NCBI RefSeq assembly: GCF_006345805.1
Contig: NW_021833011.1
Coordinates: 27,017 to 91,016 of the forward strand
Direction: 5' to 3'
DNA from: Octopus sinensis
Taxonomy: Eukaryota
Length of the DNA: 64,000 nucleotides
Shown: one piece after another, positions 24,805 to 61,366 of the stretch
Position numbering within the stretch: position 1 is the first letter of the stretch
How the letters are laid out: the number at the start of each line of letters is the position of its first letter
Program-made: the position numbers and the translations under genes
Notes under the pieces: model-generated
What the model saw: only the letters and a program-made list of their open reading frames with translations
What the model was told of the DNA's origin: nothing
The model's database searches: none

Positions 24805-25053
24805 GTGGGTTTGGAATTCAAGCTGAATCTAACAGAATTATGAAAGAAAGAAAGAGTGAACTGACACCTGGAGAAGTAGTGTCAACTAAAGCTGGTAAAC
24901 TCAAATGCAAGGCTATCCTTCATGTTGTTGGACCCGTTTGGAATGATGGACAAACTGAGGAAATTTTTCACCTTTCAAGAGCTGTTCGAAATTGTTTGGC
25001 AGGTCTTGAAGAAATGTCTTATACATCAATTGCAATTCCTGCCATCAGTACAG
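24805..25053 (+). CDS. PARP14-like: Macro-PARP (PARP9/14/15-like) exon A: central part of a macro-1-type domain
   Basis: TTTGCAG acceptor, GTAAGA donor, phase 1-1, open: (G)GFGIQAESNRIMKERKSELTPGEVVSTKAGKLKCKAILHVVGPVW...SIAIPAIST(G). Confidence 0.88.
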
Positions 25054-35200: not shown

Positions 35201-35568
35201 CAGAGAAACACCATTGTTCCATCGTGGGAAGAGTTCTGTAATAGTGTTAATTTAAATTTGGCTATGGTGGATCAAATCTACTTCATGCATGCAAGATTCA
35301 CTACATATATATACACACACACACGTGTTCGTGTGTGTGTGCACAACTGTATGTATATATATATATATATATATGTGTGTGTGCATATGCAGATTCTGAG
35401 AAAAAAGTTTTACTTTCCCTATGCTTATTAGAGTAATTTTCCTTTCTTCAACAGTTTTTTTCATAGCATTTTTGTTTTGTCTTAATAACTGATGAGATGC
35501 CAGAGCAGATTTAAGCCCTGACATACAGAACTCTGAGTTTTATTATGACAACCAACTAATTGTCACAT

Positions 35569-36220: not shown

Positions 36221-36400
36221 GTACTTTTGGTATACCCATAGAAGAAGGAACTGAATGTATAGTAACAACTATAAAGATTTATCTTGATGCTTACTCAAAT
36301 TCTAAAATAAAACATATTTGTTTGATTGATGAACAGAAGGATGTAATCAGAGCTTTTAGGCATCATCTAGAAACGGTGTTTGGAATCAGTAAAAGCAGAG
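36221..36400 (+). CDS. PARP14-like: Macro-PARP exon B: end of macro-1-type domain
   Basis: TTTATTACAG acceptor, GTAGGA donor, phase 1-1; joins exon A to give SIAIPAISTGTFGIP...KIKHICLIDEQKDVIRAF. Confidence 0.88.
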
Positions 36401-36509
36401 GTAGGACTTGTTATTTGTTTGATATTTTAGTGAAAACTAAATGATTTATTTCAGGTGTTAATTAAGATTTTTCCTCCTTCAGTCAACTTTTATCTGATTC
36501 CTATAATTG

Positions 36510-36945: not shown

Positions 36946-37104
36946 TTTAATTTATGGCTGTTGATAAAATATTCTTGTCTCATTCTGTGATTCCCTAACA
37001 AAGGATAATTATAATTATTTATCTGATACATTGTAAACATGACTTTTGTTCATATTCTAATTAATATGAAGGTATAAAGTGTCCCCACCCCCACAAAAAA
37101 AACA

Positions 37105-38780
37105 GACATTGGAGAGTTATCAAATTGTTGGATCAGGTGATGAAAGTCATGGAGAGGGTCATAGCCCAAATAATTAGGGAGAGAGTAAGTTTAGACGAGA
37201 TGCAGTTTAGGTTTGTGCCAGGGTGTAGCACCACTGACGTTATATTTCTGGTAAGACAGCTGCGGGAAATAAACCTCTGTACCTAGCCAAAGATAAACCT
37301 CTGTACTTGGCCTTCATTGACATAAAGAAAGCTTTTGACAGAGTCCCCCAATCCCTTATCTGGAGGTCACTGCAGAAAACTAGGGATAAATGAGTAGTTG
37401 GTGAGAGGTTCAAGCCATGTACAGGGATGCTGTCAGCAAGTTAAAGGTTGGCAACAAGTATAGTGAAAAATTCCAGGTAGAAGTAGAGGTTCACCTCAGC
37501 CCCCTCTTATTCATCATAGTCCTCCAGGCAGTAACTGAGGAAATCAAGATAGGCTGTCCCGGGAGCTCCTCTAAGCTGATGACTTTCCTCTATTAGCTGA
37601 TTGACTACCAGAACTAAAGAAGTTTCAGGCATTGAAGCAAGGTCTAGAATCGAAGGGCCTTAGAGTGATAGAAAAAAACCAAAGTTTTAGCAAGTAGGAA
37701 GGTTGACAAATCACGAATCCCTTCAGGTAGACTGCCCTGCTTGATCTGCAGAAAAGGTGTAGGTAGAAACTCCATAAGATGAACCCAGTGCAAGCTATGG
37801 ACATATAAAAGGTGTAGCAATGTCAAAGGAAGGTTAACCAGGAAGATAGTTGTTGTGTGTAGGTACAATAAGCACTAGAAATGTACAGAAAATAAACTCC
37901 ATCAAATGCCTGTGAGGGAGACCTAGAAGTAGTTGACAGCTTCTGCTATCTAGGTGAACAAATTAGTAGTGGAAGTGAAAGCTCCAAGTGCATAGCTGTA
38001 AGAATAAGATTAGGTTGGGCAAAGTTCAGAGAGCTTTTACCTTTGTTGGTAATGATGGGCCTCTCCCTCAGAGTGAAAGGTAGACTGTATGATATCTGTG
38101 TGCAAATAGCCATGCTATACGGCAGTGAAACATGGGCTGTGGCTGCAGAGGACATGTAAATGCTTGAAAGAAATAAAGGCACTCTGCTTCACTGGATGTG
38201 CAATGTCAGTGTGCATGTATGGCAGAGTGTAAGCATCTGGAAAGAGAAATGGTGCACAAGAGGCATCAGATGTGGTGTGCAAGAGAGAAGACTGCACTGT
38301 GGAGGGGACATGTGGAAGAGATAGACCCAAGATAGACAAGGGACGAGGTGGTGAAGCATGATCCTTGAACATTGAGCTTCATGGAGGCTATGACTAGTGA
38401 CTAACACCTTTGGCAATATTCTGTGCTTAAGAAGAACCATCAAGCCAAGTGAAATTGTAGTTGTGGCTGATGCCAGTGTTACACAAAAAGTACCTTACAA
38501 ACTTTGGTCCACACAGAGATGATAAGTTGCTGAGACCTCTGGCAATTTACCATGCTTGAGAAGACTCATCAAACCAAATGAAATCGTAGACGATGCTGGT
38601 GTCACATAAAAAGCACCCATTTCACTCTTGGAGTGGTTGGCATATGGAAAGGCATCAAGCTGTAGAATCTGTGTCAAATCTGACTGGAACCTGGTGCAGC
38701 TCTCCAGCCTATCAGTTTCAGTCAAGCCATCCAACCCATGCCAGCATGGAAAGTGGATGTTAAATGATGATGATGATGAT
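37105..38780 (+). mobile_element. Degenerate RTE/BovB LINE and 3' UTR
   Basis: Homologous to 28240-30175 with many stops; ends in (GAT)n. Confidence 0.85.
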
Positions 38781-39119
38781 GATTTACATTTTCTACTAAT
38801 CATTCTTTAAGAGAGAAATTTCTTGAAATAAGTGTTTTATTTTCTTACGTCCAATAATGTTGAACCAAGAGTTATAGCGTTGGCTGACTCTAAAGTATTT
38901 ACGAGAGGCCATTTAGCTCTGGAAGCCTTCTTCAACTGAATAACCAAGTTTCTTTCCTTGAACAGGTTACCCTGTAAGAAATTACTTATCACATGACCAT
39001 CAGCCTGAGTCATGTGATGTGGTAAGCAGGTAAATTGTGTGAAGCAGACAACACTGCCATATGAGTGATATATACATGAAACAAAAATTACAAGAAAGGT
39101 TTTAAAATGCACCATATAT

Positions 39120-39150
<31 letters not shown>

Positions 39151-39985
39151 CATACATATATATATATATCCTTGACTAAAATTTTAAAGACTACATGTTT
39201 ATTATGGACTTCTGGTCACACATGTGCAATGATATATAGCAACTAGCCTGAACATTACCTGCACCATGCCTATACATGTGTGTTGCAACGAATTTCTTTC
39301 CTTAAAATTTACAGAAAAGCATATTTTTTGATGAAATTTTTTATGAATATGCTTCAGATGGTATAAATTCCAATTCTACTGGAATTTGAGGTAAAAAATA
39401 AAAAAAGGTTTCAAAACAAATATCTGACACGTATCAGTATTTATGTCTGCAATTTTTATTTTCATATTAAATTCTTTTATTATCATAATATACACACTCT
39501 TAAAGGTACTTGTGGAAATTTTCATTTAAAAATAACCATTTTCCCAAAAGTTATGAGGAAGCAAATTTGACTTGTGTGAATTTTCTGAAACTCCTCTCTC
39601 CACTCCCTCAAAAATATTTTTTTCACACCAAATTCTCAACTTACTGGAATCTACACCATCTGAAGCCTGTTTTAATAAATGTTTTAAGCAAAAACGTTTC
39701 ATAAGAGGGAAGATCACATTTTACTAACCAGTTTCACTGTTTTCAGACTTTGAAAGTTTCAAGTATGTTCTTCAATGTATTTTTAGTCCATGTGGTAGAA
39801 GAAATAGATGGAAATAACGTATATAGCCTTGTTGCTATAAAAAGGTGTGTGGAGGGGGGTGGACTACAAGTTAGCATGTATTCTCTTGCTAAATCATATT
39901 TTCAGAAACGAAATCATTACTATTAATATGGAAATAAAGTAGTTCTTTTAAGAGAGAGGAGAAGAAAGTTTAATGTTATTTTCAG

Positions 39986-40122
39986 AAACCACATAATTCA
40001 ACGCTTCCCTTCTTGGTCCACAACAGAAAGCAGCCCCTACGACACCCAGAACTAATGTGGCATCCGGAGAAAATGCTGGCATCAAAATACAACTATTGAT
40101 TGATTCAATTTCTAATGCATCT
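39986..40122 (+). pseudogene. Disabled duplicate exon C1 (linker and start of macro-2-type domain)
   Basis: 137 nt, colinear with 48900..49036, TTTTCAG/GTGAGT sites; TAA at 39994-39996 where copy 2 has TCA. Confidence 0.8.
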
Positions 40123-40403
40123 GTGAGTAAATAGATTCACTTAACATATTTATATTTAATTGTTATTTCATTTGCAAATGAGGAATCATTACAGTTAATT
40201 AAAAACATTTTCTCAATCTAACTCAAACATTTTATTTCCTTACATCTGATCTCTTGAGTAAATCTTTTGCTAACTTTAACAACCTCAAACTTACTACAAA
40301 CCATTCTGTAGAGCCTTTCTTAACAACAATATCAACTGCAACAATGTATCTCTCTTCTCTCCACTGAATGTTCCTTAGTTGTTTACCATTAAATTCTTTG
40401 TAG

Positions 40404-40629
40404 GTTGATGTCATCATTAACAGCACCAATAAAACCTCCAGCTTAACATTGGTGTTATCTCCAAATCTATCTCAATGCTGCTGGTCCAGAGATACAAGTT
40501 GAATGTAACCAGAAATATCCTCAAGGTATTTCTACATTTGAAATAGCCATCACTAAAGGATATAACCTCAAATGTAAGAAAGTATTTCACCTGGTATTAC
40601 CTCCCTGGGATGAAAATTCATCTGATTCA
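40404..40629 (+). pseudogene. Duplicate exon D1 with two -1 frameshifts
   Basis: 226 nt versus 228 nt for 49312..49539; VDVIINSTN...AAGPEIQVEC...VFHLVLPPW. Confidence 0.8.
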
Positions 40630-40724
40630 GTAAGTATCAATCATATTATATCGATTTATTGAAAGAGTTGTTGTACAACCCTAGGTTATCATTGATCCAG
40701 CATCCCTGTGGCATGAACGGAATT

Positions 40725-42880
40725 GCACCAGGCTCCAACCTGATCTGGCATGGTTTCTGAAGCTGGATGCCCTTCCTAATACCAGCCACTCCGAGATTGT
40801 AGTGGATGCTTTTTACGTACCACTGGCATGGGGGCCAGTCATGTGGCACTGGCAACAACCAAGCTCAAATGGTGCTTTTTACATGCCACCAGCATGGGAA
40901 CAATCAGGCAACACTGGCAACAACCTCACTCGAATGGTGCTTTTTACATGCCACCAGCACAGCTGCCAATCAGGCAGTATTGGCATCCTCTATAACAATG
41001 ATTTCACTTGACTCAACAGGTCTCCTCAAGTGCAGTTTATTGGCCAAGGATTGATGGGTACTCTTAAATGGGCTGGTTATGTTACACTGGCATAGGTCAT
41101 GGTTATCGTCTCACTTGGCTTGCCAGGTCTTCTCAAGTACAGCATATCTCCAAAGGTTTCTGTTGCTTGTCATCACCTCTGTGAGGCCAACATTTTATGG
41201 TCATGCTTCACCACCTCATCCCATGTCTTCCTGGGTCTACCTCTTCTACAAGTACCTTCCACTGCTAGGTGTGACACTTTTTCACACAGCTATCCTCATC
41301 CATTTGCACCACATGACCATACCAGTGCAGTCGTCTCTCTTGCACACCACATCTGATGATTCTTATGTCCAACTTTTTTCTCAGGGTTCTTAAACTCTGT
41401 TGTGTATCCACACTGACATTACACATCCAGTGGAGCATACTGGTTTCATTCCTTGTGACCTTATGCATGTCTTCAACTGTCACAGCCTATGTTTCACTGC
41501 CATGTAGCATAGCTGTTCTCACACATGTGTCATACAGTCTACCTTTGTTACCAGCAGAGGTAGGAGCTCTCTGCACTTTGCCTGGGGTATTCTCATTCAA
41601 GAAGTTCTGCTCTCAGTGCATCCACCCCCAATGCTGGCTTGGTCACCTTGGTAACAGAAGCTATGAACTACTTCTAGTTTCTCCACCTGGCATGTGATGG
41701 AATCTGTTTCCTGCACATTTCCAGTGTTTATCGCCCCTCTGCATTTGGCACACACAAAAACTATCTTCCCAGTTAGCCTTCTTTGATATTGCTGCACCTC
41801 TTGTGTGTCCATAGCTTGCACTGGGTACATCTTATGGAATTTCTACTGATGCCTTTTCTACAGATCAAGCAGAACATCTACCTGAATGGATTTGTGATTT
41901 GTCTGTCTTCCTACTTATTAAGACGTTAGTTTTTGCGAAATTCTCTCTAAGACCCTTGATTCTAGACACTACTTCCACACCTGAAACTTCTTTAGTTCTG
42001 ATAGTAACTCAGCTATAAGAGCAAGATCATCAGCATCAAGGATCTCCCAGGGGCATCCTATCTTGAATTCCTCTGTTATTGTCTGGAGGACTATGATGAA
42101 TAAAATGGAGTTAGGGACTTGGTCCTTGGTGGATCCCTACTCAGAATTCTTCACTATACTTGTTGACAACCCTCACCTTACTGACAGTATCCCTGCACAT
42201 GGCTTGTACAGCCTTCACTAACCATTCATCTATCCCCAGTTTCCGCATTGACCACCAGATAAGTGATCAGGGGACCCTGTCAAAGGCTTTCTCCATGTCA
42301 ACGAAAGTCAGGTACAGAGGTTTATTTTTGGCTAGGTATTTCTCCAGCAGCAGTCTTACCAGAAATATAGCATCAGTGGTGCTTTTCCCTGGCACAAACC
42401 CAAACTGTATCTTGTCTAAACTAACTCTCTCCCTAATTAGTTGGGCTACAACCCTCTCTGTGACTTTCATTACCTGATCCAACAACGTGATACCTCTCTA
42501 ATTATTTCTATCTAAAGTGTCACCTTTATCTTTGTAGCAGTTGACTATTATGCTGCTACACCAGTCATTGGGTACGACTCTTTCATGTATCACCTGATTG
42601 ACTATATGGGTGACTAGGCTATAGCCGACACTGCCAGATGTTTTAAGCATCTCTGCAGTGTTTCCTGATGGGTCGGGGCTTTCCCTGTCTTCATACCCTT
42701 AATTGCTTTATCTACCCAGTTACAGTAAATTTAGATAGTTGGTCTCTCTGTTGGGTCGACATTTGGCAGACTCTCATTCTCCCATTCATTCTCTTCATTT
42801 GACAACCTTTCATAGTGGTATCTCCAAGTCTCTCTCTTTGCAGCATCATTAAATGCAATTGAGCCATTACCCATGCAGAC
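40725..42880 (-). mobile_element. RTE/BovB LINE fragments and 3' UTR
   Basis: Minus ORFs 41265..41483 and 42267..42485 (QFGFVPGKSTTDAIF, FVDMEKAFD). Confidence 0.85.
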
Positions 42881-42889
42881 ACATTTCTT

Positions 42890-43950
42890 TTCCATAAATA
42901 ATGTGATTTTTTCCATTGCATGAACTGAAAGTCGGAGGGGGATGGGAAAAAATACTACCTGCATCAACTTGCTATAAAAGCAGGTAGTAATTTTACCTTT
43001 GAATTATTCTTAATTCAAATTTTGAAGAGTGTAGTTCAATTTTAACAGTCATTTTTCAAAGCTACAATGGAAGTTACAAAGGAGCATATTCGGCATAAAG
43101 ACAATGGAAAGTGTGAGGAATATTAATACAGTATATGAGGATTGGACAATAAGTATAAGCCAGTGTCAATGGTGGTTCCACAAATTCTGTGTTGGAAACT
43201 ACAGCCTAGAAGACAACCCTCATTCTGGAAGATCTGTAGAGCTCTATGAGGATGTCCTGCAAAGCCTGGTGGAACAAAATCCCATCATACTGTTAAGGAA
43301 CTAACAGAGAAGCTTGTATTTGGTCATTCAACCATTCATCGACACCTGCATGCCACCAGACAAAGTCAGCAAACAGCAAATGGTGTCAATGATTTCCTCA
43401 CTAACTTTCTGAGTCTAATCATGCACTGAGAGTGAAGGTGTGCTCTTCTTTGCTGTCACATCTCATGAATGAATCTTTTTTGGACTGAATAGCGACTGGT
43501 GACAAGAAATGGGTTCTCTATAAGAATGTCAAGTACTGAAGTGTGTAGGGAAAGGAGAAAGACCGATACACCAGGAGAAAGAAGGTCTTCATCCATATAA
43601 GGTGTTGTTATCAGTTTGGTGAGATATGAAAGGTTAAGTCCACTTTGAACTTTTAAACCCAAACCAAACAATAACAAAGGAGATCTACAGTGAGCAGCTT
43701 GAGCAGTTAAGTCAGCACTAGAAGAACAACGACCATCTTTGGTTTGAAGACGAAAGGTGTTCTTCCATCAGGATAATGTTTGGCCACATACAGCAAGAAT
43801 GACATTCCAAAGGCTGGAGCAGTTTGAATGGGAAACGATGCCCCACCCACCATATTCATCAGACATTGCTCCATCTGATTATATCATTCATTCTGCAGTC
43901 TTCAAAAATGATTTGGATGTAAAAAATATGAATTCTACAGACGAGGTCAG
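42890..43950 (+). mobile_element. Degenerate mariner transposon
   Basis: MEVTKEHIRH start (~43067), HSGRS, VTGDKKW, FHQDNVWPHTA, PHPPYSSDIAPSDY. Confidence 0.88.
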
Positions 43951-44090
43951 AATAGCAATGAAAAAACAGGGTTTGTGCATAGAAGCTGTGATACAACGGA
44001 AGTAAACTTTAGAAGACATTGTTTTAAACAGTATGAAAGCAATGCGTGAGAGATAATACATGTGTGTGTGTGTGTATGTATATATATAGG

Positions 44091-44124
<34 letters not shown>

Positions 44125-45090
44125 AAAATAATAGAGAGAGATTCATGGTAACAAATAGAGAGAAAGACATTTGTAGTTGAGTTCTCGTTGCAAATTATAT
44201 TTTCATATTATTTATGGATGACCATTCATTGGGATGCAGATTTTGAATATCAAATTCGTTTTTTCTTGAGGATACATCGTTTCAGGGACTTTCAGGGCTA
44301 ACCACACATACAGAACCATATACACTCATATCTATATAATAGATGTACAAGATGTGTGTGTACAGACTAATGTAAATGTCTTGTCTATATATATATATAG
44401 AATATCAGTATATATATATTTTTATAGTAATGTAAACTATATTGTCTATGCATAGATGGATGTAAGCAAGATGGGTGTATATAAACTAAGCGTCATATAT
44501 ACACTTTCTGTATACAATATGTGTTGGGGACAGGAAAAGATTGTTTGGCTAGACCAGTTCCTTTTCTTCTTTCTCCTTTTATCTATACCCACAGTGTTGG
44601 GTACACGTCTGCAGATATACTCTGTAGGACAGTATATATAGCATTGAAGTAAAGCACTGTTGACATACCAGTAATTCACTGGAATTTACTCAAAGCCAGT
44701 CTGTTTCAACAGAAATGTTCTTCTTTTGGTTTTAATCAGTTTTGAAAGTAATGAGGAATTAAGTAAATTAGCTTTGTCATTATTAAGCTGGTGTTTGGGC
44801 ATAACATGGAATCTTGATACCAGTTTCAATTCCATGAATAATTTTTTACAGTCACTTAAACAAGCAAATTTCATTTCCTTTTATTCTGTAAATAAAAATT
44901 CCTCCCCAAACTACAGAATATTCAAAAGCCTGTTCATCATAGGAAGTTATTCTATGATACAATAAATGAAAATATTAATTTAAAACAATATTTGTGATAG
45001 AAACAATGAGTTAAAACATTGCATTGTAATTAACAGAAATTAATTATTTTTTCATTGAGTGATAATGAATTATTTGCTTACTTTTAACAG

Positions 45091-45145
45091 AGATTTAAAG
45101 AATATTTCCAACAAATGTCAGTAGATGGTTCAGATGTATCATCAG
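45091..45145 (+). CDS. Duplicate exon F1 (open; usage uncertain)
   Basis: 55 nt, TTTTAACAG/GTAAAT, RFKEYFQQMSVDGSDVSS(G); paralog of 56156..56210. Confidence 0.6.
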
Positions 45146-46299
45146 GTAAATTCTTTTGTTTTTTTTTTCCTCATCATCATCATCATCAATTATTTTTATT
45201 GTTATATTATTATTGAATGAGAGCAGCAAATGCCATCAAAGTGACAATGGGGTACAAATATACAAAGCGCAGTATCCACATCATTTCTACCCATCTGTTA
45301 AGGGTACACCAGGATCATGCATCACAACCATATGTGCACAACATCGTTATCTCTTATCAAGATAAACAGTGCATGGCCTATCAGGTGGGGGCCCAGTTAG
45401 AATTTCTTCAGGTCAAGTAGTCCATCGCACCCAAAAGGTCCTGAATAAGGTTATTAAAGGATGTTGAGTGAAACACTCTTGTCTCCAGGGTGAATTATTC
45501 AAACCCCAAAGAATCCAACTCACCACATAGCTATGATGCACCCACACTACTTCTGCTCATGATCAGAGAAGCACATATCATCAGCCACTAAGGGACATGC
45601 TCAAATGGTTATGGTCAAACAACTGACAAGAAAAACAGTGCTATGAATGTACCAACACACACGAGTTCAAGACATGACAATCCTCACACACTTCTCCTGA
45701 GGTATTCCAGAAAGAACTTCATGAAACTATTACAAGAACGCTTCCAACCGATTTCAGTAACCATTAGAAGAATAAGAAAACCAACTATAATAGGGACTCC
45801 GTTAGTTCCTAGCAATCTCTGAGGTAGGAATTTTTATAATCCAAAATTATAGACCATGAATAATTCAATTATTTCTAACAGTTATTATAGTCCACTCTGC
45901 ATTGTTGTACCATTCCAGATATGTTACATTGCTTATATATATGTATGTTTCTTTAAGAAAGTCAGATGGAACTTGGAAGGTAGTAAATAGTCATGAACTT
46001 GATGTCTTGAAATGGTGTTTTCTTCAGATGGTTCCCAGAATGGTTGAACATTTAACTTCACACCTTCCAGTTGATGTTGCATTCTACAAACATCCAGCAC
46101 AACTGAATTATGAAAAAGTAAACAGATAAAATCATTCGTTGGTGAGGGATTAGGGGTGAGTTGGGGAGTTCAGTGGGTAAAGACAGAAAAGTATTTGAAG
46201 ACAAAGTAATGTCATTATTATAATACATTAGCAAACAGAAAAATATAATCAACATTTAACTGATACTAAGTAAAGACTATCTCTATTAATTATAACAAA

Positions 46300-47090
46300 T
46301 ACAAGAAACATCACTGGAATGTTAGTTTCAAATTTTGGCACAAGGCCAGCAATTTCAGGAGAGTGGCTAAGTTAATTACATCAACCACAGTGCTCAGCTG
46401 GTACTTATTTTATTGACCATAAACATCACTGGAATTTTGGTTTCAAATTTTGGCACAAGGCCAGCAATTTCAGGAGAGTGGCTAAGTCAATTATATCAAC
46501 CCCAGTGCTTAACTGGTACTTATTTTATTGACCATAAACATCACTGGAATTTTGGTTCAAATTTTGGCACAAGGCCAGTAATTTCACTTGAATTTTGTGG
46601 AACCAGTTGCTCCTGTATGATAAAACTTGATATTTATTTAACTGTCAATCAGTGAGATATTAGACTAAATCAATTGAAGATCAGGCAACAGACTCAGTAG
46701 TTGTCAATTGTATTCTATCATTTATAAATTCAACACAAGAAAGTCTCTTTTCAAGTATGGACTGTATTAAAAACACACACACACAACACCACACACACAC
46801 ACACACACGCACACACACAGAGTTTGACACATGCTTTGATTTTTTGGAAAATACAACATTGAACAAAGGATATTCCAACATTTGAATGAAACCATTTCAC
46901 TTTGATTTGTGGAACCAATTGCTCCTGTATGATAAAACTTAATATCTATTTAATCAGTGAGATATTAGACTTAATCAGTTGAAGATCAGACAACAGACTC
47001 AGTAGTTGTCCGTTTGTATTCTGTCATTTAAACCTCAACACAGGAGAGTCTCTCTTTTTCAAATATGGACTTTATGAAATTTTTACTCAT
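46300..47090. repeat. Local tandem duplications (~124-bp SINE-fragment unit; ~170-bp block repeated ~325 bp apart)
   Basis: AAACATCACTGGAAT..CAAATTTTGGCACAAGGCCAG occurs three times; GGAACCA.TTGCTCCTGTATGATAAAACTT at ~46598 and ~46911. Confidence 0.8.
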
Positions 47091-47148
47091 CATACATTGA
47101 AGGACAAATCTTTCAATTTACGATTTAATATAGTAGAACATTTAATAT

Positions 47149-47204
<56 letters not shown>

Positions 47205-47407
47205 GGTGTTGTGTGTGTATATATACCTGTTATATACATTATATTATTTTTGTAATTTACTTAATTTTTACTTTTTAATTGTCATTTTAATTTTAACTTT
47301 TCTATGGTATGCAATTTTCTAGATGGTGTAACTTAATTGTTCATTTTGAATCGATAAAAGGTGTATTTTTCCTAATATTTTATGTATAAGCATGTATATA
47401 TATATAT

Positions 47408-48854
47408 TAGACCAAAGTTATAGTAAGCAGAAAGGCGAACTCAGCACACACACCCTCGGGCAGGTGACCCTGCCAGATCTGTAGGAAAGGTGTAGGTAGA
47501 AACTCCATAAGATGCACCCAATGTAAGCTATGGATGCATAAGAGGTGCAGCAACATTAAAGGGAAATTAACTGATAAGATAGCTTTCATATGCAGCAGAT
47601 GCACAGGGACAATAGACACCACAGACACACAGAAAACATATTCCATCTCACTCCAGGGGAAGAAACTAGAAGTAGTTGACAGTTTCCGCTACCTGGGTGA
47701 CCAAGTTAGTAGTGGAGGTGGATGCTCAGAGAGTATCACCACTAGAATACAAATAGCCTGGGCAAAGTTCAGAAAGCTCCTACCCCTACTGGCGACAAAG
47801 GGCCTCTACACAGAATGTCACAGGGATGGCCAAAGGTAGATTGTATGATGCATGTGGGCGAACTGCCATGCTTCACGGTAGTGAAACATGGGCTGTGACT
47901 GCAGAGGACATGCGTATACTTGAAAGAAATGAAGTAGCATGATCCGCTGGTTGTGTAATGTCAGTGTGCACGCACGACAGAGTGTAAGCACCTTGAGAGA
48001 AATGCTGGACATAAGAAGCATCAGATGTGGTGTGCAAGAGCGACGCTTGCGATGGTATGGTCATGTACTGGATGGATGAGGAGAGATGTGTGAAGAAGTG
48101 CAACTCCAAAAAAGTTGACGGTATCAGGGGGAGAGGTAGACCCAGGAAGACATGAGATGAGGTAGTCAAGCATGACCTCAGAGCGTTGGGCTCACTGAGG
48201 CAATGGCGAAGGACAGAGATCTCTGGAGATATGCTGTGACTGCAAAGACCCGGGTGCTTCATGCACCAGTTTCGCATAGCCCTGCCCATTCAAAGTACCT
48301 GGATCCCAAACGTCCACTGTGCTTGAGGAGACCTGTTGAGTCAAGTACATGAAGATGAACATCGAAATAAATATCAATGGAAATAGTTGTGATACCTGTG
48401 CCGGTGACAATAAAAAAGCACCATCCGAACGTGGCCGTAGCAGCACCGGCTCGACTGGCTTCTGTGCCGGTGGCACATAAAAAGTACCATCCAAACGTGG
48501 CCGATGCCAGCACCGCCTCGACTGGCTCTTGTACCGGTGGCACATAAAAAGCACTATCTGAACATGGCCGTTGCCAGCGCCACCTTGGCTGGCTTCCGTG
48601 CCGGTGGCACGTTGAAAGCTCCAACCGATTATGACCGATGCCGGACCCCCCCAGGCACCTGTGCAGGTGGCACGTAAAAAGCACCCACTACACTCACGGA
48701 GTGGTTGGCGTTAGGAAGGGCATCCAGCTGTAGAAACTCTGCCAGATCAGACTGGAGCCTGGGTGCAGCCCTGGCTTCCCAGACCCTGGTCGAACCGTCC
48801 AACCCGTGCTAGCGCGGAAAACGGACGTTAAACGATGATGATGATGATGATGAT
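47408..48854 (+). mobile_element. 5'-truncated, young RTE/BovB LINE
   Basis: Closely similar to 28805-30175; CpG-rich VNTR; (GAT)n tail. Confidence 0.92.
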
Positions 48855-48899
48855 ATATATACACACACACACATGTTAATTAATACTTGTTCTTTTCAG

Positions 48900-49036
48900 G
48901 AACCTCATCATCAAACCCATCCCCTCTTCATCCACAACAGAAAGCAGCTTCTGTGATACCCAAAACTAATGTGGCCCTGACAAAGAATCCTGGCATCAAA
49001 ATAAACCTAATGATTGATTCAATTTCTAATGCATCT
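48900..49036 (+). CDS. PARP14-like: Macro-PARP exon C2
   Basis: TCTTTTCAG/GTGAGT, phase 1-0, open: TSSSNPSPLHPQQKAASVIPKTNVALTKNPGIKINLMIDSISNAS. Confidence 0.8.
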
Positions 49037-49311
49037 GTGAGTAAATAGATTCATGTAACTTATTATTTAATTATTATTTCATTTCCAAATGAGGAATCAT
49101 TACAGTTAATTAAAACATTTTCTCAATCTAACTCAAACATTTATTTCCTTCACATCTGATATCTTGAGAAATCTTTTGCTAACTTTAACAACCTCAAACT
49201 TACTACAACCATTCTGTAGAGCCTTTCTTAACAACAATATCAACTGCAACAATGTATCTCTCTTCTCTCCACTGAATGTTCCTTAGTTGTTTACCATTAA
49301 TTCTTTTGTAG

Positions 49312-49539
49312 GTTGATGTCATCATTAACAGCACCAATAAACACCTCCAGCTTAACATTGGTGCTATCTCCAAATATATTCTCCTTGCTGCTGGTCCAGA
49401 GATACAAGTTGAATGTAACCAGAAATATCCTCAAGGTATTTCTACATTTGAAATAGTCATTACTAAAGGATATAACCTCAACTGTAAGAATGTATTTCAT
49501 CTGGTATTACCTCCCTGGGATGAAAATTCATCTGATTCA
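49312..49539 (+). CDS. PARP14-like: Macro-PARP exon D2: first half of macro-2-type domain
   Basis: TTTTGTAG/GTAAGT, 76 codons: VDVIINSTNKHLQLNIGAISKYILLAAGPEIQVEC...GYNLNCKNVFHLVLPPW. Confidence 0.9.
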
Positions 49540-49639
49540 GTAAGTATCAATCATATTATATCGATTTATTGAAAGAGTTGTTGTACAACCCTAGATTATC
49601 ATTGATCCAGCATCCCTGTGGCATGAACGGAATTGTCCA

Positions 49640-49930
49640 TAAAACTATGCACAATCCACAGATGTGTTTTTCCAGTCATACAACACTTCCGTCTGCTTCA
49701 AGACAGTAGCATGTATGTTGATGTCCACTGATGTACAGTATGGGCTACAGTGTGACAGTCTGGACTTGTAGCATTCCTTATAGTTTCCAGATCATGAATT
49801 CTCGGAATGGCCACTGGAAAGATAGGCAACTGCCACCATTGAGGAAAACTGACCTTTTTCCCACATGGTGATGGACGATAGGCAACTGATTACGAATCAA
49901 ATAGCCAATGTTAGGAGCATATTCCATGAG
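49640..49930 (+). mobile_element. Highly degenerate mariner N-terminal fragment
   Basis: YG...SGxP.TA..EEN...HMVMDDR.LIT.QIA-like residues. Confidence 0.4.
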
Positions 49931-50429
49931 ACAGTTTTGTCCTCACCAACCATTCTAATTGTTCCTAATGCTTGCTAACATCCAGTTCGAAATTGATTGA
50001 TATACATTGTATTGTAGATATTCCTTGAACAAACTATTACATTAAAATACAGTCTCTTGTGTGCAGTGTAGAGGATGTTGTATCCCAAACACTGCATCCC
50101 AGGCGGTTCTCTGTGTTGTCCTACCTTGTGGGCTCTATTGCTGCATTTTACAATGTGTTCTCACTCAGATTTCCCTCTTGTAAAGAATCATTAATCTCTC
50201 TTATTACCTGTTGTTGTTTCCATTAATTACAAGAGCCTACTTCAATTACACTGTGTATCCACCTAATCTTACAACATTTCTCTTTCTATTCATGGCATCC
50301 ATATGTTCATTCAGACAGGCTTCCTTCTATCACATGATCTATGTTGATCCTTCTGTCACATGATCTATGTTAATCCAATGATCACGTCGTCTATGAATCT
50401 AGTAATCACTTGATGTTGTTTAAATGTTA

Positions 50430-53240
50430 TTCTAATCTGTAAATCATATACCATTTCAGTTTGCAACAACTAAATATGTCTTGCAAACAACTTGCACATG
50501 CAAGTGCTACCAGTCAAAAGCTCCGTATACCGGAAGCCAGCAAGTGTATGGGGTCATCAGGAGAGAATGCATGCCGTTTCGGGGCCTACCTGTCGACGGC
50601 ATCAATGCGCACCAGCCCCCACCTCACTGATATGAGGCCCCACTTGCTAGATCAGCTGGTTATGAAGTTAAACTCAATATCCTTCTAGCCATCGCTCATC
50701 GTCTCTTTTTAAACCAAATCCAGTGGCTAGCCTTCTCCACTGTAGATTGGATATCGGTCATGGTGGCATTGACTTTACGATGAGTTAGGCCTAGCGATAA
50801 TAACAGTCATCTCACGCTGTGTCCAACAAACCCTCTACAACTGACTTTGATTGGAAAATGTTCTGCTTTCCAGCCTGCGTCTTCACATTCCTCGAGGATG
50901 TTTACATAACGGTTCAATTTTTGAGCCCGAGCGGCGTCCATATTATCTTCATGAGGAACCGTTAGCTCGACTATATTTACAACTTTCTTTCACACCACAT
51001 CAAATATCTGGTTTTTCGTAACTGGGATGGAAAGAAAAACTGGCACCCAGGTAAATCTGCAGTTACCTCCCACTAGCCGTTCCACTTTCCATTTCTCTCA
51101 GGAAGTTTCATGATCTTCTTGAAACAGATCCACTGACCTGGTCGCACTTAGGTAATGAAATCTCTAGATGGTACTTTCAACGGTTTTTCTCAGTGTTGTT
51201 GAGATGAATTTGGTTCTTTATAGCATTTAAGATAACCTTAAGGACCAAGTTGTGCCTCATGTATACCTGTTCAATGCTAATGAACAGTTGGAAAGAATAT
51301 GTTTTAGTGTACCGACCTTTCCACATTTGCAGATGTCATTCTCTGAGACGTTCCATCTTACTAGATTCGTAGTTGATGGCAAAAACATCATAAGATGAAT
51401 GAAACAGAAAACTCAGCTGAGATGTTGTCCACTTCACATCTCATCCCAACTTACCTTCCTCTCAACAACATGTTCTTCCATCTCGTCATTTGACCTTGAT
51501 GAAAACATCGGATCAAATGAAGCTCTCTTCTCTCTGCTTCTCTTGTTTTGACGCTGTTGCTAACAACAGATCTGTGTTCACTCCGCATCATGCTTGCAAA
51601 CAGTCTGAACTGATCTGCGCCAAAACCAAATCCTTTCCGATGGTTCTGGGTATAAGAGAAGAAAAGATGTTGTCAGTTTCTGCCTCTGCTTTCCACTTCC
51701 TGGCTGTTTTCACCTCTGGTGGGTTACGCCTGATTTCCATATCCTTCAATCCTCTCAGCATTATGACCGTCCGTATCTTCCCCAGCTTATATATTTCAAC
51801 TATTGATGCTATTGGTAGCTGCAACGAACCTCTTTAAGATAAAGAGCTGAACTGTTCAACATACAAGGTAGGCCTAGCCACTTTCTAATGAACACATTAC
51901 ATTTTTGTTCAATGATTTCAACTCGTGACAATGCTACCTCGTATATTAAAAGTGGCCATGCAAGTTGCGGGTACAAGCCGAACTGCAAGCACCAAATTTT
52001 ATATTTACCTGGTAACTTCGAATTATCAATCGCTGATAACCCAGCCTCGGCCTGTTTCATAATTTCAATCCCACGACTTCTGTCTGACAATGTTCCAGCG
52101 TATACTCGTCCCAAGCTCTTGACGGGCTCTTCCTTTACTGTTGGAATGCTTCCTTCAGATATTCGATACTTAAATTCTTTCTCCTCTCCCTTAACAATGT
52201 CAGACTATGTGATTTTGCTCTAATCGCATCATTGACCACCTTACAAGTTCGTCTAATCTCAAGAGGGCATTCTGCATGATTTGTTTATCTGTAGCTAAAG
52301 TGTCACGTCATCCATGAAGGCTTTCTTAGGCGATTGTACATGGGCGATTTGTTACGAAAAATCTACACCTTTCAAAATCAACTCCATGACTAAGATAAAC
52401 CACGTGACAGATATTGTACAGCCAGCAGCAATGCCAACCTCCAATCGGTGCCAATCTGTTGTAAAATTCCAGTTGTAAACCTCATTTCGAAAATGTCATA
52501 GTACATCCTCATTATTTTGATCACTTTGTTAGGAATGTGGAAGTGGTCCATGGCTGTTATTAGTAATTCATGTGGCACTGAACCATACCACGTTCAGACT
52601 TTTCTTGTTTGTTTGGCGTCCTGGATCGCTTTCCAAATCGAAAAACAGTGTTCAACACATCCAGGGATCCCGGCCTTTTGAACAGATTCATCAACATATC
52701 CATTACTCTGTAAATATGTCACTGTTCTCCTCGACAGAATTCCCATAAAGATCTTGCCTTCCACATTCAATAAGGATATCGGCCTAAACTGTTTTATGGT
52801 CTTTGCATTGGCCTCTTTCAGCAGGTATATACCTTCTGCCTTACACCAATCCTCTACTATAGTCTCCTCGCGCCACAGTTGTCGGAGTAGGACAAAGAGC
52901 TTCTTTCTCAGAAGATTGCAGTACTTGTGAGACTTTATATGAGAAGCCATCACCTCCTGGGGCACTCTTTGCTCTAGTCTTTCTTACGAAGTCATTCACC
53001 TCTCTGTCCCTGATGTCCCCAATCTGGAATTCAATATCAGGTCCTGAGAGATGATTTAGCCCATGTAGAGGTGGCAGCGGCTGGTTACGGTGCGGATCAC
53101 TGTAGGTTTCCTTAATATGAGCATCCAATTCTTCTTTAGTGCACGATAAATTACCACTCTTCGGTTCAGTGAACAGCTTCTTAGTAAAACCGTACGGGTC
53201 CTTCAGAAACTGCCCCCGAGTCCTTTTACTCTCCTTTCGA
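50430..53240 (-). mobile_element. 5'-truncated Hero-like RLE-type LINE, antisense in an intron
   Basis: Minus ORFs: SAPGGDG, QFRPISLLNVEGKIF, QKAGIPGCVEH, LPGKYKIWCLQFGLYPQLAWPL..RKWLGLP; RLE VELTVP and EVSCRGFVG near 50830-50980. Confidence 0.85.
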
Positions 53241-53382
53241 GGCTCATATCGGTGGAATATGTGGGAAATTTCTTAATCAAAGAATATATTTATTACAACT
53301 TAATGATTTCTCCCTGTAAGAAGAATTGGAAATAGTTCCATAAAATGTTCATTATCAATTACTAAACAATTATTTTTTTTAG

Positions 53383-53610
53383 ATTTTGGCAAACATGACT
53401 CAAATAATAACGACTTGTCTGGAAACTGCTGAGAGAATGGGAGCAAAAAGCCTTGCATTTCCTATATTAGGAGCTGGAACATTGAAGTACCCCATTGAAA
53501 ATCTACCCAGAACAATGTCTGAAGCAGTGAAAAACTACTCAAACCAAAATTCAAGCCAGATCAAAGATGTTTACTTCATGGTTTATCCTCAAGACACAGA
53601 AATAGTAAAG
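53383..53610 (+). CDS. PARP14-like: Macro-PARP exon E2: second half of macro-2-type domain
   Basis: TTTTTTTTAG/GTTGGT, 76 codons: ILANMTQIITTCLETAERMGAKSLAFPILGAGTLKYP...IKDVYFMVYPQDTEIVK. Confidence 0.9.
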
Positions 53611-56155
53611 GTTGGTTGATTTATTTGTTGTTTGATGTTGATATTCTTGGAATTTACCAAAAACCAATATTCCACAATAAAGAAAAGAAATAGAACTGAT
53701 CATTTACTGCCCTTGTTCCAAATATAATTCTCTCCTACAACATCACGGTTTTTCCTCACATACAAAACACCTCAAGCCCTCACGCAATAGAAAGAACTGA
53801 CAAACTCTCTACTTCCTGCTGAGTATACCTGTCTCCTTGTTTCCCTGCTCATATGTTTCTCTATATTACCATCACACTTCCAGGCCTCTTTCTTCACTCT
53901 AATGGCCCTGTCTACTACACTGTTCCAACACCATGCTACCATAGGTCTAATTCAGATTTGACACCACCCACAAAACTTGGTCTGCAGATCTCAGTAAATT
54001 GATTCATGGGAACTTCCCTGTATCTTCTGTGTTACACGTCTGTAACTCCCCTTCTTTTCATTAAATGCTTCACTGAAAATGCATAGACAACTGATATGGC
54101 ATGCCTGATGGGAAATGCTTGCCAAATCCTTCCTCCCAGATGCTGCATGTCATTCTCCTTCTCCATCTTACACCCTACTCCACTCTCCTGAACTTCCTTA
54201 CAATTGTTAAGTGTTCGGATCCTTCATTTCCAGTTGTCTCGTAAGAACTTCTAGCTGTCCTCTATTTTACATGTCTCTATCTCTTCCTGGTTCATGTTAA
54301 AAGTTTCAATTAGGACATCTCTAAATATCCGATCATTCAAAGTTGTTGATGATCTGCCAAAGAATATCATAAAAGCAATCCTTCTGTTCATTGGCAGACC
54401 AATTTGAATGGCATAGGCAGCAGAAATAACTGTTGCCATACAACTCTACTCCGAGCTCAAGTACCCAAACACACACTCTGACTATCTCAGCTACATTATC
54501 ACCCATTTCTCAGCTAGAAGTATGACTACTCCACCTACCCCATCGCTGATGCTTTCCCAGAGAATTTATAGATATGTATTTTGCCTGTGAGGTATATGGA
54601 CGAAGCTCCTCTCCACCTTACTTCTTGAAGGCAGCACACATCGAAACACCTCTGTTAGAACATCTCAACAGACCTAGCTTTCAATGTGTCTACATTGACA
54701 AAGCCAATTGTAGGGAACTTCAGGAGGTTGGGGCAGGGGGTAAGAGGGAGAAAGAGATGACATTCAGCATCTGGGAGGAGGAAGGATTCAGCAAGTGTTT
54801 CCACCAAGCATGCCATATCAATTGTCTATGCATTTTATCTGCCATTATTCATTCATCTTATACTTGCTGCATCTGCCTCAAGTGAGGGCTATAAAAGCAT
54901 TGTTAATACAATAATGAACATATGAAAATAACTAATTAGTTAATCAATTAACGGACTGATAGGTTCTGCATTTTGGTGCAAAGTATAGAAAGTACGACAT
55001 TAGTGTTGCAGTGATATGGATGAGAGGCAACTATGAAGGGAAGGAAGTGGGGAGGGCAGAAGAAGGATTGTTGGGAGGGGGGGTTACAGTAAGAGAATGT
55101 AGGTAATGAGAGCATGAGCGGATGGGCACATCATGAGTAAGGAAAAGATGAAATGATGGGATTTGCACATTTCCACAGCTGATGAAGTAATGGAGATAGA
55201 GGAGAGGTGAGATATATTTACAATAACAGAGATATATATTTACATTGACATTAATAATTAAATGAGGAAATGAGGCATTAGGAGAGAAACTTTGGTGATG
55301 GTGGATTAAATTAAATTAAATTAAAGATGGGTTTGTTTCAACATCATACAAACACAAGCAGGAGATGAATAGAATAATGCAAAAATTAAAGCAAAGAAAC
55401 AAATCATAATAGTTTATCTCTCATATCTTTTCATTGTGCATAGAAGTGTGTAATAGTCAGAGTTGTTATTTGAAATGTCTTGTGTTGATATACAGCATCT
55501 GTATATACAGACTAATGTAAACATCTATAGACTATATTTGTACATATAGACTAATGTAAGTACATTGTTTGTATACAACTATATTCTGTATGTATAGTAA
55601 GCAGCTTGTATATAAACTGAGGGTCATATATACACTTTCTGTATACAATATGTGTTGGGGACAGAAAAAGATTGTTTGGCTGGACCAGTTCCTTTCTTCT
55701 TTCTCCAGTGTTGGGTACACATCTGCAGATATACTCTGTAGGACAGTATATATAGCATTGAAGTAAAGCACTGTTGACATACCAGTAATTCACTGGAATT
55801 TACTCAAAGCCAGTCTGTTTCAACAGAAATGTTCTCTTTTGGTTTTAATCAGTTTTGAAAATAATGAAGACTTAAGCTGATGCTTGGACATAACATGGAG
55901 TCTCGAAAGCAATTACAATTCCATGAATAATGTTTTCTTATTCTTTAAGTAACAATTCCTCACCGAACGACAGAATATTCCAAACCCTGTCCATCGTAGG
56001 AGTTTATTTTATAATACAGTGAATAGAAATGTAAATTTAAAACAACATTCATGATAGAAGCAATGAATAAAACATTGCATTGAAATTAACAGAAATTAAT
56101 TATGAAATTATGTTTTTGATTGAGTGATGATAAATTATTTGTTTACTTCTAACAG

Positions 56156-56210
56156 AAATTTGATGAATATTTCCAAGGAAACACAACAGGTAGTTCAGCT
56201 GCATCATCAG
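56156..56210 (+). CDS. PARP14-like: Macro-PARP exon F2
   Basis: TTCTAACAG/GTAAAT, phase 0-1, KFDEYFQGNTTGSSAASS(G); completes the final macro helix after exon E2. Confidence 0.75.
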
Positions 56211-57299
56211 GTAAATACTTTCTTTTTATTATCTTAAATGTATATTCAAATTATGTCATGTCACACTTAATTGCTACTGGTAACATGTAACGCAGTACAA
56301 CGTATCACATGGTCGGATGGTCAGTGACTAAACTGGCCACTACACTGAGCTTGCTGGGTATTTGTTGGATACCCTGTAGGATGGGAAATTCAACCTGCGA
56401 AAAGGTGAAGGATCTCATGAGTAGACAATGGCCATTCAATAATGTGTATATATGTATGTCTGGTTTGTGTGTGTGTGCACGTGCATGAAAGTATATCTGA
56501 ATTGCGTATTTTCAAAACTTCTTTTCATATTTCTATATTTATACATTTATATTTATATTTTTATGCACCCCTTTTATATTTTGATAGTTTTAGCATTTTT
56601 CTTTTTGATATTTTTGTATTCTATTTCATATTCTATTATATTGTTATATTTTTGTATTTGTATATTTTTGTATTTACATATGTGTAATTTCTTTATATCA
56701 GGGAGGGTTAGTAACTCTTGTGGGAGGTGGTTAATCACATTCCATAGGACTGACAGTACCAGCAGGTTTTGTAGGGTGCATGCTGCATGATGAATCACTA
56801 TGGGCCTCTGGTCATCCCCTGCTGCAGAAACGGTCTCCAACCATAGCGATGTTCCATGCCACTGACTCAAGTATTTTTTTCTTGATGAGAGAGTGCAATT
56901 ATCTTTGTGTAATGGCTTCCAAACTTACAACAATTTCATGCACAGGTGTCTGTGCTTCTCAGCCTTCCAACAGTCAATCTCATACCCTGTGGTGAGGTAG
57001 ACCATTGATGAAGACTGCAGGTGGAGATGAGTGCTCGGAGTTCTAGTCACAAGCCTGCACATAGGAGACCAGCAGACCAGTGGTCACTGTCATTGCATTA
57101 CACATCAGAAAATTTAACAGCAACCTAAGTGACTGAGCAGCGTTATTAGGACCACACTGCACACCCTAGTAAGATAAGGGTCTAGAAAAAGTGCCTTAAA
57201 GAAAGCTTTCCCTGAACAGATCTGGTCAACTACTCGCAGCTGACAGACTTAGCCATTTGTAGTCAATTCAAACGGAGAAAGAAAGACCTAACCATTGCT

Positions 57300-61185: not shown

Positions 61186-61366
61186 ATGATGAAGATGAAG
61201 AAATAGAAGATAATGTCTTTGCTGGTCAAAAAGATGTTGGTGTCACATTGAAATTCTTAGCTAAATACAAAATCTTGACAATGCTATAGAAACTGTTAAA
61301 AAGGAGTACAATTCTCTATTAACAACTGAGAAAATACCATTTGATGTGGACTTGACAGAACCTCGA
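61186..61366 (+). CDS. PARP14-like: Macro-PARP exon G (post-macro region); one base short of open
   Basis: TTCTTCTATTTCAG/GTAAGT; DDEDEEIEDNVFAGQKDVGVTLKFLAKYK, then a -1 shift in an A4 run (~61269) restores NLDNAIETVKKEYNSLLTTEKIPFDVDLTEPR. Confidence 0.65.

Follow-up and report, generated by a model that had tools for sequence, protein, structure and literature searches.

The window analysed here, the terminal 64 kb of Octopus sinensis contig VCDQ01000043.1, appears to cover the middle of a PARP14-like (macro-PARP) gene in which a four-exon macrodomain cassette stands twice in tandem, the first copy being, to judge by its lesions, disabled in the O. sinensis sequence. The source contig is unplaced, repeat-rich and 91 kb long. 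We place the probability of this explanation as a whole, in which a duplication shared with Octopus vulgaris was followed by gene conversion and by damage to copy 1, at about 0.7.

The gene would run from a MacroD-like macro-1 domain (exons A1 and B) through two tandem C-D-E-F cassettes to exon G, beyond which, going by the ortholog, KH-like and WWE-like regions and then a PARP catalytic domain are expected (Table 1). The ortholog is O. vulgaris gene CAI9716753.1 (protein P0020, locus L004), which has macro and PARP catalytic domains and in which collinear, open and phase-compatible exons extend from A1 through the PARP domain. Window and ortholog are collinear (94-99.6% over ~28 kb, 2.1% substitutions), a level similar to that of a second sinensis/vulgaris ortholog pair (2.4% substitutions). 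Exons A1 and B together match Pfam Macro (E=2.7e-23), and A1 is 97.4% identical to its O. vulgaris counterpart. No PARP exon was found in the window, and the contig stops 2.6 kb past exon G; in O. vulgaris the PARP domain (PF00644, E=1.8e-17) lies 12-17 kb further downstream.

Table 1. Features of the macro-PARP locus in the window (positions are those of the window).
Feature	Position	Strand	Description
Exon A1	24805..25053	+	middle of MacroD-like macro-1; phase 1 in, phase 1 out; open; tblastn matches to P0011/P0020 and bacterial macro proteins
Exon B	36221..36400	+	C-terminal part of macro-1; exits in phase 1; phase-compatible with C1, C2 and G
Exon C1	39986..40122	+	cassette copy 1; splice sites intact; in-frame TAA at 39994-39996
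Exon D1	40404..40629	+	226 nt instead of 228; deletions at 40433 and 40469
Deletion junction	40724..40726	.	1,875 bp relative to O. vulgaris (L004 45145-47018), E1 removed; 2-bp TG microhomology
Old repeat block	40726..44340	.	in former E-to-F intron; RT fragment and mariner remnants
Non-LTR reverse-transcriptase fragment	42270-42497	minus	Pfam RVT_1, E=5.8e-9
Mariner Mos1-type HTH	43035-43301		Pfam HTH_48, E=6.2e-7
Possible transposase C-terminal remnant (mariner)	43748-44002		Pfam did not confirm
Exon F1	45091..45145	+	open; splice sites intact; ATG at 45115
Exon C2	48900..49036	+	cassette copy 2; open
Exon D2	49312..49539	+	open; gene conversion/concerted evolution with copy 1, together with the C-D intron
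Exon E2	53383..53610	+	open; C-terminal half of macrodomain, including FPILGAG loop
Exon F2	56156..56210	+	open; protein identical to O. vulgaris F2; exits in phase 1
Exon G	61186..61366	+	acidic linker and start of KH-like region; 181 nt against 182 in O. vulgaris

The first-pass annotation had described an exon set C-D-(E)-F present twice with homologous introns. The exon set was borne out by self-alignment, in which 39974-40725 matches 48888-49635 at 92.7% (~97% from 40100 on) and 44476-45163 matches 55607-56227 at 80-91%, and by the AG/GT signals found at every border of C1, D1, F1, C2, D2, E2 and F2. The claim of homologous introns held in part, namely for the C-D intron (~95-99% identical) and ~600 bp before F (80-91% over 270-600 bp), while the remaining D-to-F intervals are not homologous between the copies. 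Since homology reaches into the introns, a retrocopy or convergence is excluded. Cassette 2 measures 648 nt (137+228+228+55), which is divisible by 3, and is entered and left in phase 1; with B, F and G sharing phase 1 borders, it can, as had been proposed, be added or skipped in frame. Its translation is open over 215 aa and matches Pfam PF01661 Macro (E=7.6e-20, 71.5 bits, cut-off 22) and, the ortholog protein having both Macro and PARP catalytic domains, the view of the module as a whole macrodomain inside a macro-PARP gene is supported. Exon E is itself symmetric (phase 0-0) and so forms a second, smaller unit for in-frame loss.

The label 'macro-2-type' also agrees with the bit scores. 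The best solved relatives of the cassette are human PARP14 macro2 structures (3Q71, 5O2D and 3VFQ domain 2) at 103-106 bits, compared with 47-50 bits for PARP14 macro1 and 49 bits for macro3 (4ABK). Judged from these scores, the cassette is a PARP14-macro2-type macrodomain, a putative ADP-ribose reader; from INSTN...NIGA in place of NAAN...GGG, together with the retained FPILGAG loop, we infer that it may bind mono-ADP-ribose without hydrolysing it.

Because O. vulgaris has both cassettes, the duplication is an old one and no artefact of assembly. At L004, exons C1, D1, E1, F1, C2, D2, E2, F2 and G are all open with good splice sites, and the O. vulgaris chromosome OX597814.1, an independent assembly, has both cassettes, arranged in that order and with introns orthologous to those of the window. 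An unplaced, repeat-rich contig might invite the idea that copy 1 is an assembly duplication, i.e., a collapsed or expanded repeat absent from the genome, but this is ruled out by that chromosome and by C exons that differ between the copies at 19 sites common to both species, and we give it virtually no credence. The comparison of orthologous loci, which had been suggested as a check, thus finds the two cassettes shared and the copy-1 lesions confined to O. sinensis. It also amends the idea that the locus had gained an extra reader domain and was now losing it: the tandem gain stands and copy 1 is disabled here, but the gain is neither recent nor specific to this locus, O. vulgaris having both cassettes, all open.

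Either intragenic duplication or unequal crossing-over between clustered paralogs may have given rise to the two-cassette state, and gene conversion afterwards homogenised the C-D intron and D exon. The divergence between the two copies is as large as that from cassettes of other paralogs. Exon C has 19 orthology-type sites and exon D has one; in exon D, 13 sites are identical in both O. sinensis copies and O. vulgaris copy 1 and differ from O. vulgaris copy 2, and O. sinensis D2 matches O. vulgaris D1 at 94.6%, against 91.4% for O. vulgaris D2. This tract, flanked by the orthologous pattern, points to gene conversion between the tandem copies over the D exon. The direction of conversion is not polarised by these sites; alternatively, another paralog might have converted O. 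vulgaris D2.

Two lesions are central to the state of copy 1. The in-frame stop noted earlier in C1 is present and private to the O. sinensis sequence, the O. vulgaris C1 having TCA (Ser) and the paralog protein P0023 also having Ser at this position. The missing E exon between D1 and F1 was likewise confirmed, as tblastn with the E2 peptide found no E exon other than E2 anywhere in the window, and the deletion junction could be mapped against O. vulgaris, in which E1 is present and open at L004 45871-46099. A microhomology-mediated deletion removed E1, i.e., the C-terminal half of the fold including the second phosphate-binding loop, which kills the domain and preserves the reading frame, and the TCA-to-TAA change in C1 breaks that frame. 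This damage would have arisen in the O. sinensis lineage or in one haplotype; seen in one assembly of such a contig, the stop and the E1 deletion could be haplotype-specific.

The sequence described as 'RTE and mariner' between D1 and F1 does contain reverse transcriptase and mariner matches, the RTE clade being beyond the resolution of Pfam. Displacement of E1 by this block was considered and rejected, because the block is shared with O. vulgaris (97.2%, collinear) and with the paralog L003, which retains E (87-91%).

The two -1 shifts in D1 are a different matter. They are present in the sequence, relative to D2 and both O. vulgaris copies, and are private to O. sinensis, but the background of 1-bp deletions suffices to explain them without genuine mutation. 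Against O. vulgaris, 1-bp deletions outnumber 1-bp insertions by 95 to 34 over 28 kb (p = 7e-8), whereas longer indels over the same 28 kb are symmetric (29 vs 26). The second locus repeats this pattern (62 vs 30 for 1-bp deletions and insertions, 20 vs 19 for longer indels) and also has frame switches within the conserved exon G. From this surplus ~3.7 1-bp deletions are expected in 1.7 kb of exons, and three were observed. The D1 frameshifts are weak evidence because the assembly has this strong excess, and the three coding 1-bp deletions (the D1 pair and the one in G) most likely arose as errors in the long-read consensus and should not be counted. The supposedly 'live' part of the locus is not clean either, as exon G, after cassette 2, has a -1 shift: one C is missing at ~61268-61269, giving a premature stop at 61287-61289, where the NCBI model ends, and G otherwise has zero differences from O. 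vulgaris.

Could copy 1 then really be intact, or in frame, in O. sinensis, its lesions reflecting either errors or, on an unplaced contig, a rare haplotype? The excess of 1-bp deletions is strong and replicated, the second contig has frame switches within a conserved exon, and E loss alone keeps the frame; an annotated isoform of an O. sinensis paralog (P0019) contains an E-less cassette in frame. However, the TAA is a substitution and not an indel, and E1 was lost through a clean deletion of 1,875 bp that shows 2-bp microhomology and has its left end in unique sequence, unlike consensus-polishing errors. A macrodomain without E cannot fold, so the reader domain would be dead in any frame, and we consider an intact copy 1 improbable.

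The only transcript model at hand, NCBI P0001, encodes 260 aa, and its CDS starts at the ATG inside F1. It begins with MSVDGSDVSSG-TSSS, which is the F1-to-C2 junction, and B-to-C2 is not used. The splice from B to C2 put forward in the first-pass annotation is phase-compatible but hypothetical, and the NCBI model does not support it. The gene model of O. vulgaris skips F1, C2, E2 and F2, so that joint use of both cassettes in one mRNA is hypothetical in both species. Because all copy-1 splice sites are intact, C1, D1 and F1 are probably still spliced in, and full-length transcripts would bear a premature stop unless the three were skipped together.

The NCBI isoforms X1 and X2 (the 260-aa and 213-aa models) take their start codons from F1 and C2 and include no upstream exons, and O. 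sinensis has many short macro-only 'PARP14-like' models. Both observations would fit two genes, with a stand-alone macrodomain gene starting in or near F1, downstream of a truncated macro-1 gene. The short models are, however, bounded by lesions (the TAA upstream and the G frameshift) and so resemble the longest segment left open in a long gene that is broken; this pattern recurs at the second locus, where the O. vulgaris ortholog is a macro-PARP of 764 aa, and the collinear, open and phase-compatible exons of O. vulgaris from A1 to the PARP domain also speak for one gene. We therefore give little weight to two genes here and continue with a single macro-PARP gene.

A more serious alternative is that the entire O. 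sinensis locus is a decaying (unitary) pseudogene, with copy 1 most visibly damaged and copy 2 looking intact because the decay is recent. The whole locus, and not only copy 1, may be dead because the 20 kb upstream of A1 showed no sign of the large 5' exon (KH-like region and first third of macro-1) and because exon G is frameshifted, which cuts the ORF short. Homology to O. vulgaris upstream of A1 starts only 36 bp beyond the donor site of this 5' exon, and NCBI annotates only the 260-aa fragment and no upstream gene. For most exons, including A1, B and G, the pN/pS between the two species lies near 1, from very few sites, and it offers no evidence of constraint on copy 2. On the other hand, the G shift fits the error background, in an exon otherwise identical to O. 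vulgaris over 181 nt, the 5' exon may sit in the 27 kb of the contig upstream of the window, and C2, E2, F2, A1, B and F1 all retain an open frame and intact splice sites. We consider whole-locus decay unlikely, while leaving it appreciable weight, and favour a gene in which damage is centred on copy 1.

Vertebrate PARP14, PARP15 and PARP9 follow the same domain logic, with a MacroD-like macro-1, macro2-type readers and then a PARP catalytic domain. Gene turnover is frequent among them. PARP15 is a partial duplication of PARP14 that was lost five times and is without the first macrodomain in elephant and manatee (PMC4038475), and three macrodomains plus PARP are considered the ancestral architecture, with homologs in molluscs (PMC10221186). 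In the octopus, by contrast, the unit gained or lost is an exon cassette within one gene and not a gene copy. The two octopus cassettes are both of macro2 type and have intron DNA in common, so the third macrodomain represents a lineage-specific re-duplication and not the ancient macro3. Single-cassette paralogs have macro-1 and one macro2-type domain only.

Symmetric phase 1-1 modules are the classical substrate of exon shuffling and duplication (Patthy's rules). The octopus cassette resembles them in being phase 1-1, a multiple of 3 nt and flanked by phase 1 neighbours (B, F and G), but it spans four exons instead of one and contains the symmetric 0-0 exon E. Among octopod relatives the cassette number ranges from 1 to 4, with annotated proteins of 1, 2 or 4. 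In O. sinensis XP_029633869.1 ('PARP15 isoform X4'), four cassettes lie between macro-1 and the PARP domain, of which one lacks E (C-D-F) and is in frame, and Argonauta hians GAB1599116.1 has two nearly identical cassettes. Both are annotated as open, whereas copy 1 of the window has a stop, and its E is deleted from the genome and not merely skipped. The octopus case is of a known and familiar type, in which immune genes of a fast-evolving family gain and lose domains, and assembly errors obscure part of the picture.

More tentatively, and with the odds in our view somewhat against it, octopod macro-PARPs may use the four-exon, phase 1-1 macro2-type cassette, including half-cassettes without E, as a copy-number-variable unit that clustered paralogs reshuffle among themselves through unequal crossing-over and gene conversion, with sister species in different states at this locus (three working macrodomains in O. 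vulgaris, two in O. sinensis). If true, this possible reading would mean that, in an invertebrate without an interferon system, an arms race with pathogens over ADP-ribosylation had driven a presence/absence difference of a reader domain within a gene.

Self-comparison of the window places the tandem C-D-(E)-F copies of the macrodomain cassette where the first-pass annotation had read them: 39974-40725 matches 48888-49635 at 92.7% identity and 44476-45163 matches 55607-56227 at 80-91%, and the exon borders are canonical. Cassette 2 is 648 nt long and in phase 1 on entry and exit, as had been claimed, and the duplication of such symmetric phase 1-1 modules is a textbook path of domain accretion. 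It encodes an open Macro domain (Pfam E=7.6e-20) with human PARP14 macrodomain 2 as the nearest solved structure (3Q71, E=1.7e-29), PARP14 macro1 and macro3 scoring about half the bits of macro2 against it. The cassette-2 peptide is a 100% match to P0001, the O. sinensis NCBI model 'PARP14-like isoform X1' (260 aa), whose gene lies on contig VCDQ01000043.1 (91,016 bp) of assembly GCA_006345805.1. The locus retrieved from there is the same as window 35115-64000, which makes the window the contig's final 64 kb. The lesions described for copy 1, namely a TAA in C1, two -1 shifts in D1 and the absence of E1, are all present in the sequence.

Exons of the PARP14-like gene and repeat features of the first cassette (window positions)
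Feature	Position	Remarks
Exon A1	24805-25053	with B, most of the MacroD-like first macrodomain
Exon B	36221-36400	leaves in phase 1; exon B of the first-pass annotation
Exon C1	39986-40122	canonical AG/GT
Exon D1	40404-40629	canonical AG/GT
RT fragment and Mos1-type mariner HTH		between D1 and F1
Exon F1	45091-45145	canonical AG/GT
Exon C2	48900-49036	canonical AG/GT
Exon D2	49312-49539	canonical AG/GT
Exon E2	53383-53610	canonical AG/GT
Exon F2	56156-56210	canonical AG/GT
Exon G	61186-61366	acidic linker; 3' of cassette 2

The O. vulgaris ortholog locus (L004) is collinear with window 20770-63952 at 94-99.6% identity, and the substitution divergence between the two (2.1%) is close to that of a second sinensis/vulgaris ortholog pair (2.4%). 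Each of the nine O. vulgaris exons from C1 to G (C1, D1, E1, F1, C2, D2, E2, F2 and G) is open and has good splice sites. As both cassettes are open in O. vulgaris, the duplication is older than the species split, and an assembly duplication of copy 1 is ruled out. On its exons, the O. vulgaris gene potentially encodes three macrodomains, and a three-macrodomain protein is possible. The annotation of its protein, CAI9716753.1, runs from E1 to a cryptic donor within D2 and on to G (L004 44401-66103), bypassing the open F1, C2, E2 and F2; this gene model is probably wrong.

A recent duplication can also be set aside, since protein divergence between the copies (identity of 69% for C, 83% for E and 50% for F) is at paralog level, high identity being limited to a conversion tract. 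The two cassettes are no closer to each other than to the cassettes of other paralogs; F2 shares 89-94% identity with the final F exon of two O. sinensis chromosome paralogs, and the O. sinensis C1 protein, which has six private differences from O. vulgaris C1, shows 95% identity to the C exon of P0023, a paralog from an O. sinensis chromosome, vs 89% to its O. vulgaris ortholog. The resemblance of C1 to P0023 hints at conversion between paralogous genes and not just between cassettes. Given this divergence and these likenesses, the arrangement is either old or the inferred product of unequal crossing-over between clustered paralogs. The proposed gain of a reader domain therefore holds as far as the duplication goes, but not as a gain specific to this locus, the duplication being ancient and intact in the sister species O. 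vulgaris.

The conversion tract is seen in exon D. In exon C, 19 sites set the two species' first copies apart from their second copies, whereas exon D has one site with this grouping and 13 at which O. sinensis D2 equals both D1s and differs from O. vulgaris D2; O. sinensis D2 is 94.6% identical to O. vulgaris D1 vs 91.4% to O. vulgaris D2. The pattern is that of gene conversion or concerted evolution, spanning both the C-D intron and the D exon, in a direction that the sites leave unpolarised.

The absence of E1 between D1 and F1 is borne out, E2 being the only E-like exon in the window, and its cause is a plain deletion: 1,875 bp corresponding to L004 45145-47018, which holds E1, are missing from O. 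sinensis at a clean junction (40725/40726) with TG microhomology. The RT and mariner sequence reported from this interval is indeed there; O. vulgaris has the block in collinear position at 97% identity, and the single-cassette paralog L003 has it at 87-91%, with E lying immediately upstream of it. Its insertion is ruled out as the destroyer of E1, because O. vulgaris and L003 share the block and both retain the upstream E; the block has long been part of the E-to-F intron. Exon E is 228 nt long and in phase 0-0, so its loss alone keeps the frame, and an annotated paralog isoform carries an E-less cassette in frame. The loss nevertheless takes away the C-terminal half of the fold, which leaves the copy-1 reader domain dead in any frame.

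The remaining lesions differ in how far they can be trusted. Private to O. sinensis are the E1 segment loss, the change of TCA to TAA in C1 (39994-39996), two single-base deletions in D1 (40433 and 40469) and a 1-bp deletion in G. The last is a missing C at about 61268 (TACCAAAAT to TACAAAAT), apart from which exon G matches O. vulgaris over 181 nt; the resulting stop at 61287-61289 terminates the NCBI 260-aa model. Aligned with its O. vulgaris ortholog over 28 kb, the O. sinensis contig shows 95 1-bp deletions vs 34 1-bp insertions (binomial p = 7e-8), while longer indels are symmetric (29 vs 26). A second O. sinensis contig behaves likewise (L005 against its O. vulgaris ortholog L006; 62 vs 30 and 20 vs 19, respectively), and in its conserved exon G (35225-35416) the frame switches twice, the gene model being shortened to 226 aa, against 764 aa for the orthologous O. 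vulgaris macro-PARP. Real mutation cannot yield such an asymmetry between two lineages but consensus errors can. PacBio reads underlie the assembly, going by the Li et al. 2020 title that PMC11202624 cites. Since a surplus of this size would put about 3.7 spurious deletions into the 1.7 kb of window exons, where three are seen (two in D1, one in G), and since G shows no other difference from O. vulgaris, we did not count the D1 and G frameshifts, which on this comparison are probably assembly consensus errors. Neither the E1 deletion nor the TAA belongs to the 1-bp error class. The view that copy 1 is dying thus survives on these two changes, both absent from O. vulgaris, and probably loses the D1 frameshifts as genuine lesions.

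Canonical splice sites are retained in C1, D1 and F1. A splice from B to C2, as the first-pass annotation proposed, is phase-compatible across the 12.5 kb from 36400 to 48900 but finds no support in the NCBI models, and it would mean skipping three exons, all with good splice sites. Copy 1 would be an in-frame linker or a stop-bearing trap, hinging on a single TAA substitution from one assembly. An alternative acceptor in C1 avoiding the TAA (CAACAG, about 40021-40026) is ruled out by a wrong frame and an early stop. NCBI isoform X1 starts MSVDGSDVSSG-TSSS, its CDS running from an ATG at 45115 within F1 through the F1-to-C2 junction, and X2 starts at a Met within C2; each appears to be the longest open run between the upstream TAA and the downstream G shift. 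That the entire O. sinensis locus is a pseudogene seems unlikely to us. A pN/pS comparison of the two species gave values near 1 over very few sites, counts too small to show constraint or lack of it.

The N-terminal third of macro-1 was not found in window 1-24700 with bacterial and octopus macro protein queries. Nor do the 20 kb before A1 contain an equivalent of the large 5' exon (L004 27700-29283), which comprises a KH-like region and the beginning third of macro-1; either the locus is truncated or this exon is in the contig's 27 kb upstream of the window, both being possible. Homology to O. vulgaris begins (breakpoint 20770) at a SINE-like element, 36 bp beyond the donor of this exon, and a telomere-like (CCCTAA)3 lies close by at about 20686-20703. 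An inverted piece of the family's large 5' exon, start codon included (MQHQLEGVKLNVQPFWEPSEENTISRHQVHDYLLPSKFHLTFLKKH), occupies 45936-46121 on the minus strand, in the F1-to-C2 intron and adjoining tandem repeats (46235-46586). Its identity with L004 27644-27904 is about 90%, and the O. vulgaris F1-to-C2 intron, the middle 2-3 kb of which is unrelated, lacks it. The species also differ by a TE insertion, a LINE-like segment in the O. sinensis A1-to-B intron (31329-32348) having its 94%-identical copy in the O. vulgaris B-to-C1 intron (L004 41549-42570).

Querying the full set of protein representatives with a paralog recovered long octopus relatives. CAI9716753.1 of O. vulgaris (P0020, 1402 aa) combines Macro with PARP catalytic domains, XP_029633869.1 of O. 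sinensis places four cassettes (one without E) between macro-1 and the PARP domain, and in a protein of Argonauta the cassette occurs twice, in near-identical copies. These genes therefore form a true macro-PARP family with variable cassette number, and the tandem cassette duplication within such a gene is real. In the O. vulgaris paralog L002, two C-type exons lying just some 175 bp from each other (45901-46341) are a further small-scale exon duplication within the family, and an intact E exon (47404-47628; 3-bp in-frame deletion) is skipped by its gene model, P0011.

Our literature search found nothing on the octopus PARP14 family. Vertebrate PARP14, PARP15 and PARP9 show repeated duplication, loss and macrodomain truncation, with positive selection (PMC4038475); the octopus genes are alike in gain and loss, but the unit is an exon cassette inside a gene. 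Three macrodomains plus PARP are considered ancestral and are found in molluscs (PMC10221186); unlike the ancient macro3 of that architecture, the 'third' macrodomain in octopus is a macro2-type domain that was duplicated again. Several PARP14-like models of the O. sinensis reference are cut to short 'macro-only' proteins by 1-bp deletions that are probably consensus errors, so frameshift-based pseudogene calls and domain counts taken from this assembly need read-level confirmation. In the likely sequence of events, a frame-neutral exon cassette duplicated, its copies stayed similar through gene conversion, and copy 1 was then lost via a small deletion and a nonsense change. Macro-PARPs are fast-evolving antiviral/immune genes whose macrodomain number varies among paralogs and lineages, and this locus is a concrete, datable non-vertebrate case of such a change.
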